The translations under genes were made by a program, and so were the position numbers. A DNA stretch of 64,000 bases, taken from the NCBI GenBank assembly GCA_977020255.1, contig CDROCS010004206.1, positions 1-64,000 on the forward strand. Direction: 5' to 3'. The stretch comes from Obrimoposthia wandeli (taxonomy: Eukaryota). Below are positions 13,035-19,587 of the stretch, piece after piece (the first letter of the stretch is position 1; every line of letters starts with the position of its first letter). The notes beneath the pieces were generated by a model. That model did no database searches. It was not told the origin of the DNA and worked only from the letters and a program-made list of their open reading frames with translations.

Positions 13035-15211
13035 ATGCATCCTCTAAGACTGAAGCCAAGACCATCGCCTTAGTCGGTAACCCCAACTGCGGTAAAACGA
13101 CCCTATTCAACACCTTGACCGGAGCTCGTCAGCGCGTAGGCAACTGGCCAGGAGTCACCGTTGAACGAAAAAGTGGTGATTACACACACGCCGATACCGA
13201 ATACCAAGTCATCGACTTACCCGGCACTTACTCCATCGGTGCTGATCCTCGTACGAATAAAGAAGGGGCTACGAGCAGTGATTCGATTGACGAACAAATA
13301 GCCCAGCAGTTTGTACACAACAAAGAAGCCGACCTCATCATCAACGTGCTCGACGCTTCCAGCTTAGAGCGTGGCTTGTACCTGACCTCGCAACTGTTTG
13401 ATTCTGACATCCCGATGATCGTCGCGTTAAACATGATCGACGTTGCTCATAGCAAAGGCATGCACCTAGATCATCAAGCTCTGGCCGAACAGCTAGGCTG
13501 TCCTGTGGTGCCATTAGTCGCCAGTAAAGGCGATGGTTTAATCACCCTAATGGACAGCATAGAAACGCGCTTGCTGAAACCCAGCTATGAACAAAACTCG
13601 CTCAATTTTGATGAGTCTATTCAAGACAACGAACCCGCCTTAATTCAAATGCGTTATGAATGGGTCGATAAGGTCTGCAAAAACGTTATCGCATTAAGTG
13701 AACAAAAAAACAAAACCATTAGCGAATACATCGACGACATCGTTTTAAATCGTATCTTAGCCTTACCGATTTTCATGGCGGTCATGTATTTGTTATTTAT
13801 GTTCGCCATTAATGTCGGCAGCGCTTTTATTGATTTTTTCGACATTACCGCCGGCGCATTATTCGTTGAATCGCCGCGCTGGTTATTACAAAGCATCAAT
13901 GCGCCCGAATGGATAACCGCCCTCATCGCCGACGGTGTCGGTGGCGGCATACAACTGGTCGCGAGTTTCATTCCCGTTATCGCCGCGTTATTTTTATCGC
14001 TATCGTTTTTAGAAGACGTCGGTTTCATGGCCCGTGCTGCGTTTATTATCGATCGCATCATGCGCTCACTGGGCTTACCCGGAAAAGCATTTGTACCCTT
14101 GATTGTCGGCTTCGGCTGTAACGTGCCTTCGGTAATGGCTGCCCGAACGTTAAGCAGAGAAGGCGATCGCTTAATCACCACGTTAATGGCGCCCTTTATG
14201 TCTTGCGGTGCGCGCTTAACCGTTTACGTTTTATTCGCCTCTGCATTCTTTGTTGAGAACGGTGCAACCGTTGTATTTAGCTTATATGTGACTGGAATAT
14301 TGGTGGCCGTATTAAGCGCCTTTCTTGTGCGCCGCTTGATTCTACCGGCGGATGACAGCAGTTTTATTATGGAACTGCCCCCGTATTTATTACCGACCTT
14401 TCGTAATTTATGGATGCATACTTGGCACCGTTTAAAAGGCTTTGTATTGCGTGCAGGTAAAGCGATTGTCGCCGTGGTTGTAGTATTAAACGTATTAAAT
14501 TCCATGGGCACCGATGGCAGCTTTGGCAACCAGAACCAAGAGCAATCTGTACTCAGTGAAATCGGTCGTTTCTTAACACCCGCCTTCACCCCAATGGGAA
14601 TCGAACAAGATAACTGGCCTGCAACTGTGGGTATTTTCACCGGTTTATTTGCGAAGGAAGTCGTCGTCGGCACACTGGATGCACTCTACACATCGGGCAA
14701 TACCCAGTCGGATGATTTCAATTTATTAAGCAGCCTAAAAGATGCGGTAGATTCTATTTCCAAAAATTTAACCGACGTAGCGGATAACTTAGATGATCCG
14801 CTAGGGTTAAACATGGGAGACCTAAGCGATAGCCAAGCCATTGCGTTAACACAAGACATATCATTTAGCACAATTGAAGTGATTCAGCAGAAGTTTCACG
14901 GCGAATGGGGAGCTTTTGTGTATTTGTTATTTATCTTGCTGTACATGCCTTGCGTAGCAACCTTAGGTGCAATAGTAAAAGAACACGGTGCGTATTGGGC
15001 AGGCTTCAGTATGCTTTGGTCTTTCAGTGTGGCGTATGTATTAGCGGTAGGATTATTTCAAGCGGTTACTTGGCAGCAGCATCCTACGACCTCTTTAATG
15101 TGGATAGTAGGATTAGCGGTTTGGCAGGTTGTATTGACGATTTTGTTATTCAGAAGCGGTAAGAAGCAAGCGCTGAAAGAGAACTTGATTCCTATGGTCG
15201 ATGTTAGCTAG
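13031..15211 (+). CDS. feoB: Ferrous iron transport protein B
   Basis: G1 GNPNCGKT, VGNWPGVTVE, DLPGTYS, NMID, GFGCNVP, APFMSCGARL, LYMPCVAT. ATGA overlap with the feoA stop gives start 13031. Confidence 0.95.
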   Translation: MNASSKTEAKTIALVGNPNCGKTTLFNTLTGARQRVGNWPGVTVERKSGDYTHADTEYQVIDLPGTYSIGADPRTNKEGATSSDSIDEQIAQQFVHNKEADLIINVLDASSLERGLYLTSQLFDSDIPMIVALNMIDVAHSKGMHLDHQALAEQLGCPVVPLVASKGDGLITLMDSIETRLLKPSYEQNSLNFDESIQDNEPALIQMRYEWVDKVCKNVIALSEQKNKTISEYIDDIVLNRILALPIFMAVMYLLFMFAINVGSAFIDFFDITAGALFVESPRWLLQSINAPEWITALIADGVGGGIQLVASFIPVIAALFLSLSFLEDVGFMARAAFIIDRIMRSLGLPGKAFVPLIVGFGCNVPSVMAARTLSREGDRLITTLMAPFMSCGARLTVYVLFASAFFVENGATVVFSLYVTGILVAVLSAFLVRRLILPADDSSFIMELPPYLLPTFRNLWMHTWHRLKGFVLRAGKAIVAVVVVLNVLNSMGTDGSFGNQNQEQSVLSEIGRFLTPAFTPMGIEQDNWPATVGIFTGLFAKEVVVGTLDALYTSGNTQSDDFNLLSSLKDAVDSISKNLTDVADNLDDPLGLNMGDLSDSQAIALTQDISFSTIEVIQQKFHGEWGAFVYLLFILLYMPCVATLGAIVKEHGAYWAGFSMLWSFSVAYVLAVGLFQAVTWQQHPTTSLMWIVGLAVWQVVLTILLFRSGKKQALKENLIPMVDVS

Positions 15212-15228
15212 AACATAGCTTTCATATA

Positions 15229-15702
15229 TCAGACCAAAGGGTAAAAGGGATAGTCTTTTTGAAACTCGGTGAGTTTGAATTCTTTTTGCATTGTTTCTGC
15301 TAAATCTAAACGGCGGCTGCGGCGAGCATCTAGGCCATCGAATTTAAGCAGTTGTAAACATTCGATGCAGACGGTTTGATTCGTCGGTTGGTGCAGTCCC
15401 GCGATAAAATCTGATTTTTTATGACGACGTTTTTGCACTAGATCACAGGCCGCTAAGTGAAAGTTTTCATGTTCTGGCCAGCTTAACCATAAGCGGGTAT
15501 TTTTAAATCCAAAGGTTTTATCTTTTAGTATTCGTAAGCGATTACTCGGCACATTAAAGCTGCCTGTTTCTAATAACTCGCGTTCGCTATAGGTTATTTG
15601 TTTTTCGGGGTCGAAGAGTTCAAAGCTACCAAGTTTTTCTGCACCCATTTCTTTGCGCAGCTGATTAAACGGTTCGAAGTCTTCAAAATCTTTTATCCGC
15701 AT
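15229..15702 (-). CDS. zorE: ZorE N-terminal-domain-only protein (no HNH nuclease)
   Basis: FHLAAC, VCIECLQLLKFDG and FKLTEFQKDY match, from memory, FHIAWC, VCMNCLERLNYKG and FSLNEFFSDY of E. coli type II ZorE. ATG overlaps the zorB stop (TAATG). The protein ends where the HNH region would begin. Confidence 0.7.
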   Translation of the reverse strand: MRIKDFEDFEPFNQLRKEMGAEKLGSFELFDPEKQITYSERELLETGSFNVPSNRLRILKDKTFGFKNTRLWLSWPEHENFHLAACDLVQKRRHKKSDFIAGLHQPTNQTVCIECLQLLKFDGLDARRSRRLDLAETMQKEFKLTEFQKDYPFYPLV

Positions 15703-16409
15703 TAAAGCACCTGATCTAATATGGTGGCGATGCGGCTATCGGCATCGGTGCGGACTTTAAACTCTACTCGGCGCGAGCGTTCTGAATCTTCGTTGCCATT
15801 TTCGTCGCGTATTACTTTTGCTGATGATAAGCCGTTGGCGGTTAGGTATTGTTTAAGCCAGTCTTTATTCTGCTTTACTTCTGCTAGCCCCATAACAAAA
15901 CCCAAGGTTGAGCGCGTTCGGGCTTGGGATAAATCCATGTTCCGAATATAGGCGTCGTCGTCGTCGTATGCGCCGAGCCAGCCCGTTGAGGTATGGCCTT
16001 CGATTCGAATTTCTAAGATGTCGTCGTGATAGGCTTCCTGAGTAATGATGCGGATATAGCGCGGAAAGAAGTCAGCCAAGATGGCTTTAAATTGCTGCTT
16101 CAATTCTGACTTGCCGTTATCGAATAATATTTCGCTATCGTTAAAACGAAAGGACAAATCTTTATCCAGCTCGGCTCGCCATTTGGGCAAGTCTTCTGCA
16201 AATTCTTCTTGTAAGTCTTTATATAACTCTTGGCGTAGGTGATCGTATAAAATCGCTACGTCTTGAATGCGATCACGCTCGGTTTCTACGTCCACCATAA
16301 AGACAACTGAGATGAGCATGAAAATCATCATCAAGCCTGCCATTAGATCGCTTACCGCAACCCAGTGGCCTTCTTGTTCTTTTAGTTGTTCTAGTTCATT
16401 TTCGTGCAT
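15702..16409 (-). CDS. zorB: Zorya ZorB (MotB/OmpA-like), type II
   Basis: HWVAVSDLMAGLMMIFM TM with Asp21, then LFDNGKSELK, FFPRY, EIRIEGHTS, NMDLSQART, SRRVEFKV; closely resembles type II ZorB as recalled. Confidence 0.85.
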   Translation of the reverse strand: MHENELEQLKEQEGHWVAVSDLMAGLMMIFMLISVVFMVDVETERDRIQDVAILYDHLRQELYKDLQEEFAEDLPKWRAELDKDLSFRFNDSEILFDNGKSELKQQFKAILADFFPRYIRIITQEAYHDDILEIRIEGHTSTGWLGAYDDDDAYIRNMDLSQARTRSTLGFVMGLAEVKQNKDWLKQYLTANGLSSAKVIRDENGNEDSERSRRVEFKVRTDADSRIATILDQVL

Positions 16410-16433
16410 GCTGCGTTCTCTTAACTAGATGGC

Positions 16434-17687
16434 TCAGTTTGATGTTTCGCTTGAGCGTATTTCTTCAGCAAGCTTCACCACGTCTTGTAGCTTTTGCGTG
16501 AGCGGTGAGTAATCACTCACAAACTTCTCTGATAAGGCGGTGAGCTGCATGCCAAAAGATTGCAGCGCTTTATTCAATTCTTCTTCCATGGAATCGTCTA
16601 ATACCGCTACTTGGCGCTCTACTTTTTCGGCAATGCGTGTCAGTTGCTGTTGAGTCTGCTGTTGTTGCTGCTGTAATTGCGTACTGGAGTTTTCTAGCAC
16701 TGCGGATAGTTGCAACTGAATCCCTTCTTGGGCATTGGTGATGTGTTCAACGGTCCAACGCTGTTGCTCATGAACTTGTTCTGCAATGCCGGTCGTTAGC
16801 GTTGCAATACGTTCTTCTAATTGCGGTAATCCATCAGCCGCATTATTCACCACGTTGGCCAAGCCTCCGAGCTGATCTTGCAAGTTGGAACGCTGTGCGT
16901 CTAAGCCGCTGAGCATTTCTTGCAGAGATTCTGATATGCCATTAAACGCGTTGGCATGCTTCACCATGTATTCAAAAGCGTGACTGGCATCTTTCATCGA
17001 GCTAGCGGTGCGTTCTTGCTCATCGGTTAATTGTTGTAGCTGGGCGCGATAGTTATTTTGCCAATCCAGCATTTTGCCAACACTTTCGTTTAGGCGTTTA
17101 AAGTTATCGCCATATTGCTCGTTAATGCGCGCATTGAAGTCTTGCATCACCGCTTCAATCGCTTCCACCAGCGCTTTGGCGTTGGCATCGGCCATGCGTT
17201 CTTCGTAATGCTCTAATACATAAACGATTTTACCAACACCATTTTGATTATCTTCGTGCTGGCTTTTTAACAGTGCGGGCACGGATTCTGAATTTTGTGG
17301 ATTAAATTGATCGGCGAGCGATTTTAATGATGCATCAAGATCGTCGATGCTGGCTGCCCGTGTTTGATGCTTTGTACGTCTGCCAGATTGCGAGAAGGTA
17401 CTCCGTAGCTTGATGGTAAGTGCGCCAAGTAAGCCCGCAATCGACGACCAGAAAGCGGTTTTCAGACCATCCATCAGTTTCGGTACACTGCCATGAATGT
17501 CAGTGGTATCGAAACTCCACAAGCCTAATGCTACACCGAGGAAGGTACCGAATATGCCGATACTGGTCAGTATGTTTGGGGCTAACTCCACTGTTTTGGT
17601 GGAATAATGAAAAAAATGAAAATAGATCGTTAATACCGTAATGATGGCGATGAGTATTAAGGTCCATGGAGAGAACTGCTCCAGCAT
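16434..17687 (-). CDS. zorA: Zorya ZorA (MotA/TolQ/ExbB-like channel with long cytoplasmic tail)
   Basis: Three TMs in the first ~95 aa (IGIFGTFLGVALGL; LKTAFWSSIAG), short periplasmic loop, ~320-aa helical tail; 24 bp upstream of zorB. Confidence 0.83.
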   Translation of the reverse strand: MLEQFSPWTLILIAIITVLTIYFHFFHYSTKTVELAPNILTSIGIFGTFLGVALGLWSFDTTDIHGSVPKLMDGLKTAFWSSIAGLLGALTIKLRSTFSQSGRRTKHQTRAASIDDLDASLKSLADQFNPQNSESVPALLKSQHEDNQNGVGKIVYVLEHYEERMADANAKALVEAIEAVMQDFNARINEQYGDNFKRLNESVGKMLDWQNNYRAQLQQLTDEQERTASSMKDASHAFEYMVKHANAFNGISESLQEMLSGLDAQRSNLQDQLGGLANVVNNAADGLPQLEERIATLTTGIAEQVHEQQRWTVEHITNAQEGIQLQLSAVLENSSTQLQQQQQQTQQQLTRIAEKVERQVAVLDDSMEEELNKALQSFGMQLTALSEKFVSDYSPLTQKLQDVVKLAEEIRSSETSN

Positions 17688-18019
17688 GTAAATATCCCTG
17701 CGACAATTGAAAATCTATCCAAAGCTTAGTTCAAATTGAGCCATTCTTCCTTATTGGAATAAAAAAAGTCTCGAATGGAGAAAAATATTCTAACAATCAT
17801 AGATTATTCATTAGATAGAAGGCTTAAACCTTTATGGATCTGCGTCCGAGAAACATGTCTTTATTCAGAGTCATTCATCAATATAAGGTAGCTTTTCACC
17901 GCTTCGTACTGACATAAATTCACATTGTGAAATATTGTCTACACTTAATGAAATAGGTTCAGAAATGAACTGCCTGATTGTTGTGAAAAAACTTATATTC
18001 TATTTCCTAGGAGAGAGTT

Positions 18020-18445
18020 ATGAAGAAGAAACAAGGACAAAAAATAGTACTGCTCGCGAGCTTGTTATTATTTAGTAGTTTGTCATTATCTGATATGGCC
18101 GTCATTGTGCACCCAGAAAATACTTCTACATTCAATAATGCGATTATTAAAAAAATATTCTTAGGCAAACAAACTAAGTTTACTAATGGGCAGATAGCCC
18201 TTCCAATGAATGCCACGGAAACATTGCCGACTTACGATGCTTTTAATGACAATGTTATTGGAAAATCAAGAACTCAAATTAATGCTTATTGGGCTAGATT
18301 AGTATTCACAGGTAAGGGAGACCTACCGAAGATATTAACTTCTGATAGCGACATAGTTTCAACCGTCTCGACAAATCAAGGAGCCATCAGCTACGTTGAC
18401 TCATCTTCAGTAACCGATAAAGTTAAAGTTATCGCGAATTTCTAA
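18020..18445 (+). CDS. Small PstS-like periplasmic substrate-binding protein
   Basis: Signal peptide, AVIVHPEN, IFLGK, YWARLVFTGKG, GAISYV. Confidence 0.8.
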   Translation: MKKKQGQKIVLLASLLLFSSLSLSDMAVIVHPENTSTFNNAIIKKIFLGKQTKFTNGQIALPMNATETLPTYDAFNDNVIGKSRTQINAYWARLVFTGKGDLPKILTSDSDIVSTVSTNQGAISYVDSSSVTDKVKVIANF

Positions 18446-18457
18446 CGGAGCTAAATC

Positions 18458-19587
18458 ATGAAATTACTAAAAACAATATCCATTGCTTCATTAGCGGTGA
18501 TGCTCGCATCCCCTACACTGGCAGACGTTAAATTCAGCGGATTCGGATCTCTGGTTGCTGGTCAAACATTAGAAGATGACGAAAAGTTAAACGCTGACTT
18601 CTATGATGTGGGCCAATATGAAAATACCACAACATTTAAAGCAGAAAGTGTTCTAGGTTTGCAAGTTTCAGCAGACATTGCGCCTGATTTGAAAGCAACG
18701 GGGCAATTGCTTGCAAAAGGTACTGACGAATTTAAACCTGAACTTGATTGGTACTATCTAACCTATAAGGCTACTGATGATTGGACGCTAATGGCAGGCC
18801 GCCGGAATATTCCGATGTACTATTATTCTGAGTTCTCTGAAGTTGGTTATGCTTATCCTTGGATTCGCCCACCATCAAATTTGTATTGGTGGCAGGTTAC
18901 GCAGTTTGATGGTTTCCATGCGAGCTACGATTTTAGTACAGATAATTATACGAATAGCATCACTGCATTTTACGGCAATGAGTATTCATACAGACAATAA
19001 AAGAAATGCTTTATTATGCGAGATAAGTAATACAACTAATTGGTCCAATGGTATCTATCGACGAAGATTGGACTGATATTGCGGGCTTTAATGTCAATAT
19101 TATTGGTGAATCATTTGATATGCGCATGGTTTACTTCCAGAATGACCGTAAAAGAATTGATACCAATGTGAATGGTGAAACCGCTGTTAGAGCAAGTGCT
19201 TCTGGTTTCTCTCAGCAATTCTTTGGCGTGGGTGGTAACGTGAACATAGATAACCTTACTATTATTTATGATGCGAACTACGTAGCTTATGATGATGATG
19301 TAGGTACCGTATTCCCTACTTATTTGATTTCGACTGTCTATAACATTGGTCAATACCAGCCTTATTTGTCGTATTCAAAAGCTGATCATTGGCAAACAAA
19401 GTCGGACAATGAAAAGAACTATGAAGAGCATTACATGGCGAGCATAGGCGTGCGCTATAACCTCAGCTCAAAGGCCTCAGCCAAGCTTCAATTCGATCAC
19501 TTCGAAGATGAAGGCGATAAAGCAACGGGTTGGGACTATCACGGTAACTCACAAACCGTTACTGCCGGTGTAGACTTTATTTTCTAA
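18458..19587 (+). pseudogene. Outer-membrane porin split into two ORFs (18458-19000, 19048-19587)
   Basis: Signal peptide, KFSGFGSL, SVLGLQ, YPWIRPP in ORF1; barrel C-terminus ending VDFIF in ORF2. At least two lesions lie within 18990-19050. Could be sequencing error. Confidence 0.75.

Follow-up and report, generated by a model that had tools for sequence, protein, structure and literature searches.

Background

Zorya systems are built on a membrane motor, ZorAB. In the current models this motor only senses and recruits, and a nuclease kills. In type II Zorya (zorABE), ZorAB recruits ZorE, a nickase effector, to the membrane on infection. In ZorE of E. coli, DUF8245 is the N-terminal domain and an HNHc domain lies in the centre (2026 preprint), and a type II ZorA5B2 complex from S. 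kujiense has been solved (PDB 8VVI). In type I, rotation of the motor and the tip of the ZorA tail are both needed for effector recruitment, which is abolished when the tail tip is deleted. Here we describe a type II-like Zorya operon in a stretch of 64,000 nucleotides, referred to below as the window (positions 1 to 64,000 of the forward strand of contig CDROCS010004206.1, assembly GCA_977020255.1, filed under Obrimoposthia wandeli). The operon encodes ZorA, ZorB, and a short third protein, here called mini-ZorE, which corresponds to ZorE without its HNH nuclease domain (Table 1).

The analysis shows that the three genes form a complete and selectively maintained relative of type II Zorya, in which a ZorA5B2-type, peptidoglycan-anchored, ion-driven motor is combined with mini-ZorE. 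This type II-like Zorya is conserved, has no nuclease, and contains DUF8245 as a separate subunit; it is a new form of a known system. No description of an HNH-less Zorya subtype was found in literature searches.

A type II ZorAB motor

All three proteins match PADLOC profiles of type II Zorya (ZorA2, ZorB2, and ZorE2). ZorA matches the 420-position ZorA2 model (PDLC00637) end to end, over residues 5-410, with an E-value of 1.8e-114 and 380.8 bits, while the ZorA1 and ZorA3 profiles give just 50.7 and 32.3 bits. ZorB matches ZorB2 (PDLC00641) with an E-value of 6.9e-95. The closest solved relatives of both proteins are the chains of PDB 8VVI (E 3.4e-52 for ZorA and 7.2e-51 for ZorB). As a control, we used a canonical, HNH-bearing system (L041), whose ZorA, ZorB, and ZorE have 397, 242, and 299 amino acids (aa). 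Its ZorA and ZorB show the same pattern of profile scores as those of the window, with which they are 32% (over 390 aa) and 53% identical, respectively.

The NCBIfam ZorA2 and ZorB2 scores are under the equivalog cut-offs for the window and also for L041. With ZorA2, for example, the window protein scores 143.8 bits against a cut-off of 700, and the canonical control only 150 bits. These cut-offs are therefore narrow, since a canonical HNH-bearing system falls below them too. The Pfam families of ordinary stators are also sub-threshold (MotA_ExbB on ZorA, 16.9 bits with a cut-off of 22.9; OmpA on ZorB, 26.3 bits), and therefore this is not an ordinary stator pair. An earlier sequence-only reading of the window had left room for a plain MotAB/ExbBD pair next to a gene unlike zorE; the PADLOC profiles, PDB 8VVI, and the full-length alignment of the third protein with DUF8245 place the locus in Zorya instead.

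The channel residues that the same reading had judged intact are all found in the translations. ZorA has hydrophobic N-terminal helices at about residues 8-27, 36-58, and 77-95; Thr48 lies within a GIFGTFLG motif, and Ser81 and Ser82 are also present. Asp21 of ZorB stands directly before the transmembrane (TM) helix. The peptidoglycan-binding residues N152, L155, and R159, mutated in EcZorB, follow an N-x2-L-x3-R spacing that is kept in the window ZorB. Within ZorA, conservation is highest in the TM2 block. The coiled-coil tail is about 320 residues long, and the block at its tip is conserved as well as the channel helix block (0.88 vs 0.89). The tail-tip motif (Table 1) is common to the window-type ZorA and the canonical, HNH-type ZorA of L041.

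The letters of the junctions confirm the compact minus-strand operon. The zorA stop codon is followed by a 24-nucleotide spacer and the ATG of zorB, and the TAA of zorB overlaps the ATG of mini-zorE in the sequence TAATG. The stop codon of mini-zorE (15229-15231) is separated from that of the convergent feoB (15209-15211) by 17 nucleotides, also as previously noted, so that there is no space for a frameshifted or decayed HNH remnant. The GC content of the operon is 0.43-0.48, similar to that of its flanks, and 0.36 in the upstream intergenic region. The sigma-70-like match in that region agrees with the consensus at 9 of 12 positions, and such matches are not enriched over shuffled sequence.

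Table 1. Features of the HNH-less Zorya operon, in window coordinates
Feature	Position	Strand	Description
zorA	16434..17687	-	417 aa; ZorA2-type, three N-terminal TM helices and a long coiled-coil cytoplasmic tail
zorB	15702..16409	-	235 aa; ZorB2-type, plug/TM Asp21 and a C-terminal OmpA-like peptidoglycan-binding domain
mini-zorE	15229..15702	-	157 aa; free-standing DUF8245 protein, ZorE without the HNH nuclease domain
ZorA tail tip, aa 381-400, motif ALSEKFVSDYxPLTxKL	16488..16547	-	putative docking site for mini-ZorE
mini-ZorE N-terminal ~30 residues	15613..15702	-	putative ZorAB-coupling peptide
mini-ZorE His82/Cys86...Cys112/Cys115	15358..15459	-	predicted zinc site
Presumed operon promoter region, AT-rich upstream intergenic	17688..18024	-	one weak sigma-70-like match, 18024 to 17997

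Mini-ZorE, DUF8245 without an HNH domain

Mini-ZorE is colinear over its whole length with the N-terminal ~190 aa (DUF8245) of HNH-bearing ZorE. It ends at a YPxxP motif, from which the long forms go on into a linker and a CxxC...HHxNG...NLxxLCxxCH module. Its match to the PADLOC ZorE2 profile (E 1.3e-12) is confined to positions 4-106 of 282, and HNH-less relatives match positions 3-186 and no further. A hidden Markov model (HMM) of the HNH module recovers both canonical controls but gives no ZorE-type HNH anywhere in the window (64 kb) or in the ~540 kb that surround 37 HNH-less loci; its two weak matches (E 0.0015 and 0.012) are at noise level. The nuclease domain is thus absent and not frameshifted, as the sequence-only reading had argued: the protein ends before the linker, the feoB stop codon follows at once, and the HNH model is empty. 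Together with the colinearity, this supports the central claim of that reading, a type II-like Zorya without a nuclease in its third gene.

The precomputed label PF26739 (DUF8245) is carried by all 65 near relatives of mini-ZorE and by its orthologues in the fetched loci. A Pfam scan of the window protein itself gives no family, the copy of Pfam used being presumably without PF26739. An NCBIfam scan of the 157-aa protein matches no family either; in particular, there is no match to ZorE (NF041791), with which canonical ZorE scored 136-157 bits. A second PADLOC-DB profile named ZorE2 (PDLC00646, 162 positions) spans the DUF8245 region only, corresponding to residues 8-164 of canonical ZorE. It is matched by an HNH-less Oceanospirillum protein (E 2.4e-06) and not by the window protein at E <= 1. 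This profile shows that short ZorE-like sequences are already in PADLOC-DB; its label, 'ZorE2 / HNH endonuclease', is misleading for HNH-less proteins. The coverage thresholds of PADLOC presumably let HNH-less loci be called Zorya type II, and censuses by PADLOC or DefenseFinder probably tally them as ordinary type II systems. The 2026 preprint retained only ZorE 'containing a recognisable endonuclease domain', which implies that HNH-less variants were seen and set aside.

His82, Cys86, Cys112, and Cys115 of mini-ZorE are invariant in alignments of 16 and 49 sequences, and their conservation is 0.98-1.00 in the HNH-less and HNH-bearing groups alike. The equivalent histidine of E. coli ZorE, His90, lies in a predicted zinc site, and the H90A mutation abolishes defence in E. 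coli (2026 preprint). Also conserved in both ZorE types are E40, D61, T63, K67, and R70, and, near the N-terminus, residues including F6, L15, R16, M19, A21, G25, and F27. The segment common to the two types is the N-terminal ~75 residues, of which the first 40 are the best-conserved part of mini-ZorE within the HNH-less loci; between HNH-less and HNH-bearing ZorE, conservation is strongest in the first ~30.

The AlphaFold2 model of mini-ZorE is of good confidence (predicted local distance difference test score, pLDDT, 88; predicted template modelling score 0.76), with lower values (pLDDT 66-80) in the N-terminal ~30 residues. The model has no solved structural relative (best E 3.4 by Foldseek against the PDB, best Z 2.1 in a wide VIA-align search), and the fold searches show no similarity to any nuclease fold. 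Its matches among AlphaFold database clusters are DUF8245 proteins only, including a canonical HNH-bearing ZorE and a cold-shock-domain fusion. A protein atlas search gave scores under the useful range. Reading D61...K67 as a PD-(D/E)xK site was rejected: Ala stands two positions before K67, and no fold match was found.

Outside the shared segment the two types have diverged. The DUF8245 part of long, canonical ZorE is basic (median isoelectric point, pI, 9.2), with YIRD...P-FH and RRYV as conserved motifs. In the HNH-less family, the median pI is near neutral (6.6; 7.7 for the window protein), YIRD...P-FH and RRYV are missing, and the family has two motifs of its own, FDP and GxDxxRxR. The latter lies in an exposed loop of lower model confidence.

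Some relatives vary in other ways. The mini-ZorE of Thalassolituus sp. LLYu03 (P0065; L022:8001-8585 / L004:6001-6585) is 194 aa long; here the His/Cys and CxxC halves of the zinc site are separated by an inserted tandem peptide repeat of TGNAA type, in the loop that also bears a ~20-aa insertion in canonical ZorE. Many HNH-less ZorE proteins outside the Oleispira group (e.g., P0078, P0080, P0085, P0089, P0101, and P0105) have ~10 extra C-terminal residues that follow YP[LIV] and end in hydrophobic-Phe. This extension, which the window protein does not have, may be a short docking tail. In the 320-aa AlphaFold database entry C6I003, the DUF8245 fold (residues 118-318) stands behind a cold-shock nucleic-acid-binding domain and no HNH follows, a further sign that DUF8245 is a module combined with various partners.

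Distribution and evolution

The mini-ZorE triad is conserved under strong selection across marine Gammaproteobacteria. A word-indexed search gives 65 clusters of near relatives at 39-98% identity, nearly all with 155-166 aa (three are shorter and one has 194 aa). An exhaustive search gives 101 representatives; of the 78 that are full-length, 61 are without the HNH module and 17 have it. The length of the HNH-less forms is constant across 29-98% identity. A scan of species-representative genomes, made with a tight 11-sequence alignment because a 49-sequence alignment had no stretch conserved enough, retrieves 32 loci from Oleispira, Bacterioplanoides, Thalassolituus, Marinospirillum, Oceanospirillum, Terasakiispira, and Bermanella, and also from Saccharospirillaceae. 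In these loci zorA (412-457 aa), zorB (235-274 aa), and mini-zorE (154-213 aa) always stand in the same order. Only in L037 is the triad incomplete, its contig breaking off within mini-zorE. The same triad is found in the most diverged members and in Cellvibrionales (Aurantivibrio). A strain-specific truncation next to relatives with full-length ZorE had been considered in the sequence-only reading; the short form is found in all 32 loci.

In the closest Oleispira pair (dS 0.7-0.9), the ratio of nonsynonymous to synonymous substitution rates (dN/dS) is 0.037 for zorA, 0.019 for zorB, and 0.050 for mini-zorE. The medians over all usable Oleispira pairs, for most of which dS is near saturation, are 0.03, 0.03, and 0.06, respectively. 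The sequence-only reading had asked whether an HNH-less third gene of ~150-160 aa recurs with dN/dS well below 1; it does recur, with a dN/dS of about 0.05.

In a tree of the DUF8245 region, which is unrooted and whose sampling is biased towards relatives of the query, the HNH-bearing forms fall in one clade (98 in the Shimodaira-Hasegawa-like approximate likelihood-ratio test). This clade also contains six short rows, probably fragments or decayed copies. The remaining HNH-less rows (~60), among them the window protein, branch outside this clade in many deep lineages. Because the tree is unrooted, it does not tell whether the HNH domain was gained or lost. In a tree of the concatenated triad, every genus is monophyletic with strong support, and the number of label changes (6) is the minimum possible, which fits mainly vertical inheritance. 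The window triad groups with Oleispira and is 95% identical to that of Oleispira sp. 9NakV-01.

Two of the loci, L015 and L016, come from one metagenome-assembled genome (Oceanospirillaceae SAT97) and have near-identical triads with the same neighbours on two contigs; this is probably bin redundancy or strain heterogeneity and not true duplication. In a diverged locus (L040:655-1941), the zorA call is split in two (305 and 113 aa) before zorB and a 150-aa mini-ZorE, a possible frameshift or decaying copy.

Genomic context

The flanks of the operon in the window are housekeeping genes: feoAB and genes for a PepSY-TM protein, a pseudouridine synthase, SPFH/NfeD proteins, a porin, FadE, a methyltransferase, and the DbpA helicase. 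Among the open reading frames of at least 130 aa between about 2 kb and 31 kb of the window, none is an integrase, a defence gene, or a nuclease, which bears out the absence of flanking integrase and defence genes reported before. Synteny of the neighbours exists within lineages only, with a fadE-like gene in Oleispira, an M48 peptidase and two YbjQ genes in the Thalassolituus group, and bolA in Cellvibrionales. Among 121 neighbour proteins of 15 diverse loci, no PADLOC family matched more than one protein, and tblastn found no plasmid or phage copies of the triad.

The only loci with the look of a defence island are L001 (8839-12474), L002, L003, and L021, all from one Oceanospirillaceae lineage, in which NucS_C-like, Abi_2, DUF2971, and SNF2-helicase genes are located 2-6 kb downstream of the triad. 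In Oleispira (L006-L012), between 0 and 5 extra genes lie between mini-zorE and feoB, and contigs from public sequencing runs (X2-X4) diverge at 15229/15233 (window 15212-15233). This looks like a variable spot directly downstream of an otherwise fixed operon. Upstream of zorA and divergent from it, two open reading frames of ~180 aa on the plus strand (18458-19000 and 19048-19587) are in different frames, and the second matches Pfam Porin_4; they look like one frameshifted porin gene.

Function of the nuclease-free system

We think it rather probable that mini-ZorE is a non-catalytic output or adaptor coupled to ZorAB. On envelope perturbation, ZorB would anchor to peptidoglycan, as in Zorya I and II, and ion flow via Asp21 of ZorB would turn ZorA. 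The conserved tip of the ZorA tail would then engage the conserved N-terminal ~30-40 residues of mini-ZorE. We infer this docking only from the co-conservation of the tail tip and the ZorE N-terminus. Coupling as such is in line with the recruitment of ZorE by ZorAB on infection and with the effect of tail-tip deletion in type I. The rest of DUF8245 may have been reshaped in the HNH-less family for a non-catalytic output. Most likely, mini-ZorE would be an adaptor and use the exposed GxDxxRxR loop peculiar to its family to recruit or activate some factor encoded at another locus; or it might instead occupy a nucleic-acid or protein target directly. It is reported that some HNH-site mutants of E. 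coli ZorE keep synergy with Druantia against phage Bas37 and that the DUF8245 mutants H90A and E99A do not (2026 preprint). A non-catalytic role of ZorE is plausible for this reason.

Several points weigh against a ZorAB-coupled adaptor that serves defence. ZorE is required for type II defence in E. coli and in the study of Mariano et al., and mutation of its likely catalytic HNH histidine (H226A) abolished both defence and synergy (2026 preprint). The nuclease-free version may therefore not defend at all. The near-neutral pI of mini-ZorE and the missing canonical Tyr/Arg motif weaken a DNA-binding role. No universal fourth gene stands beside the triad across the loci, so that the adaptor has no named target. 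In addition, a core-genome position, genus monophyly, and the lack of plasmid and phage copies are unusual for a defence system.

These last features lead to the main and serious rival, namely that the triad is a domesticated or ancestral module outside defence, a vertically inherited sensor of envelope integrity or stress in marine Gammaproteobacteria, in which mini-ZorE relays the state of the motor to a cellular process and does not attack phage DNA. We consider it the less likely reading, with a weight that cannot be called small. The housekeeping flanks (feoAB, porin, fadE, SPFH/NfeD, and RNA helicase), the synteny within genera (fadE, M48/YbjQ, or bolA, depending on the lineage), the minimum of label changes in the triad tree, the very low dN/dS of 0.02-0.05, the lack of a recurring defence family among the neighbours, and the loss of the basic character of canonical DUF8245 all agree with it, and the core-genome, vertical context raises domestication above the weight that the sequence-only reading had given to it. 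However, every characterised ZorAB system is anti-phage, L001 and L021 adjoin Abi_2, SNF2, and DUF2971 genes, and stable inheritance is also possible for chromosomal defence systems.

The remaining explanations concern how a system without a nuclease could act, or whether it acts at all. If an activated ZorAB channel depolarised the cell, causing abortive infection, mini-ZorE would be only a regulator or a plug of the tail. The intact channel residues, the strong conservation of the TM2 block, and the absence of a nuclease speak for this, but depolarisation was looked for and not seen in Zorya I or II, type II ZorAB alone causes no DNA damage and gives no defence, and Hu et al. explicitly refute the depolarisation model for type I. 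The strong selection on the tail tip and on mini-ZorE also argues for a cytoplasmic output, and we regard ion flux as improbable. Slightly less probable still is a cryptic catalytic activity of DUF8245 itself, e.g., as a metal-dependent nuclease. Its fold has no solved relative, the His/Cys3 site and the acidic, Thr, Lys, and Arg residues listed above are conserved in both ZorE types, and H90A abolishes defence in E. coli; however, the His/Cys3 residues look like the structural zinc site that the 2026 preprint models, no nuclease-fold similarity is seen, and in canonical ZorE the HNHc mutation H226A abolishes defence and synergy despite an intact DUF8245. A decaying remnant of canonical zorABE, or an ordinary MotAB/ExbBD pair beside an unrelated small gene, we count as refuted. 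The missing HNH domain and the low NCBIfam scores could be read in this way, but a canonical system is under the same cut-offs, the ZorA2 and ZorB2 profiles match very strongly where Pfam MotA_ExbB does not, and the alignment with the DUF8245 part of ZorE takes in the whole third protein. Decay is further contradicted by the constant length over many deep lineages, by purifying selection, and by the position of the HNH-less forms outside the HNH clade.

Significance

A widespread, strongly selected type II-like system without a nuclease would mean either that the output of ZorAB is useful without DNA cleavage or that DUF8245 is a general adaptor to effectors encoded elsewhere. Mini-ZorE is a natural separation-of-function allele: it keeps the putative ZorAB-coupling part apart from the catalytic part and makes the role of DUF8245 directly testable. 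The core-genome, vertical context also raises the question of housekeeping roles for some 'defence' motors. More speculatively, the triad might be an old, vertically inherited sensor of envelope perturbation with a non-cleavage output, from which canonical type II arose when the DUF8245 adaptor captured an HNH nuclease. We hold this scenario to be doubtful; if it is true, all type II motors couple through DUF8245, and the motor serves the cell in some way beyond phage defence.

Comparison with known systems

The 5:2 stator motors MotAB, ExbBD, and TolQR resemble the window system distantly in fold and share its TM Asp/Thr ion path. Specific to Zorya are the DUF8245 partner and the long tail of coiled coil. 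What the window locus has in common with Zorya type I (zorABCD) and type III (zorABFG) is the ZorAB motor, in which soluble partners are recruited by a long ZorA tail. Unlike these types, the window locus has no ZorC/D or ZorF/G genes, and its ZorA tail is shorter than that of type I.

The closest known system is Zorya type II, as in the E. coli systems and S. kujiense (8VVI). The gene order is the same, the operon is equally tight, and the proteins are of ZorA2 and ZorB2 type. The length of ZorA is similar (397 aa in L041), with the same conserved tail tip, and mini-ZorE and the DUF8245 domain of ZorE are homologues that share the His/Cys3 site. The window system differs from type II in that its third protein is without the HNH nuclease that makes ZorE the effector. 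In addition, mini-ZorE is without the YIRD and RRYV motifs and the basic pI of the canonical DUF8245 part, and FDP and GxDxxRxR are motifs of its own. Finally, the HNH-less loci are chromosomal, syntenic, and vertically inherited, in contrast to carriage on islands or mobile genetic elements.

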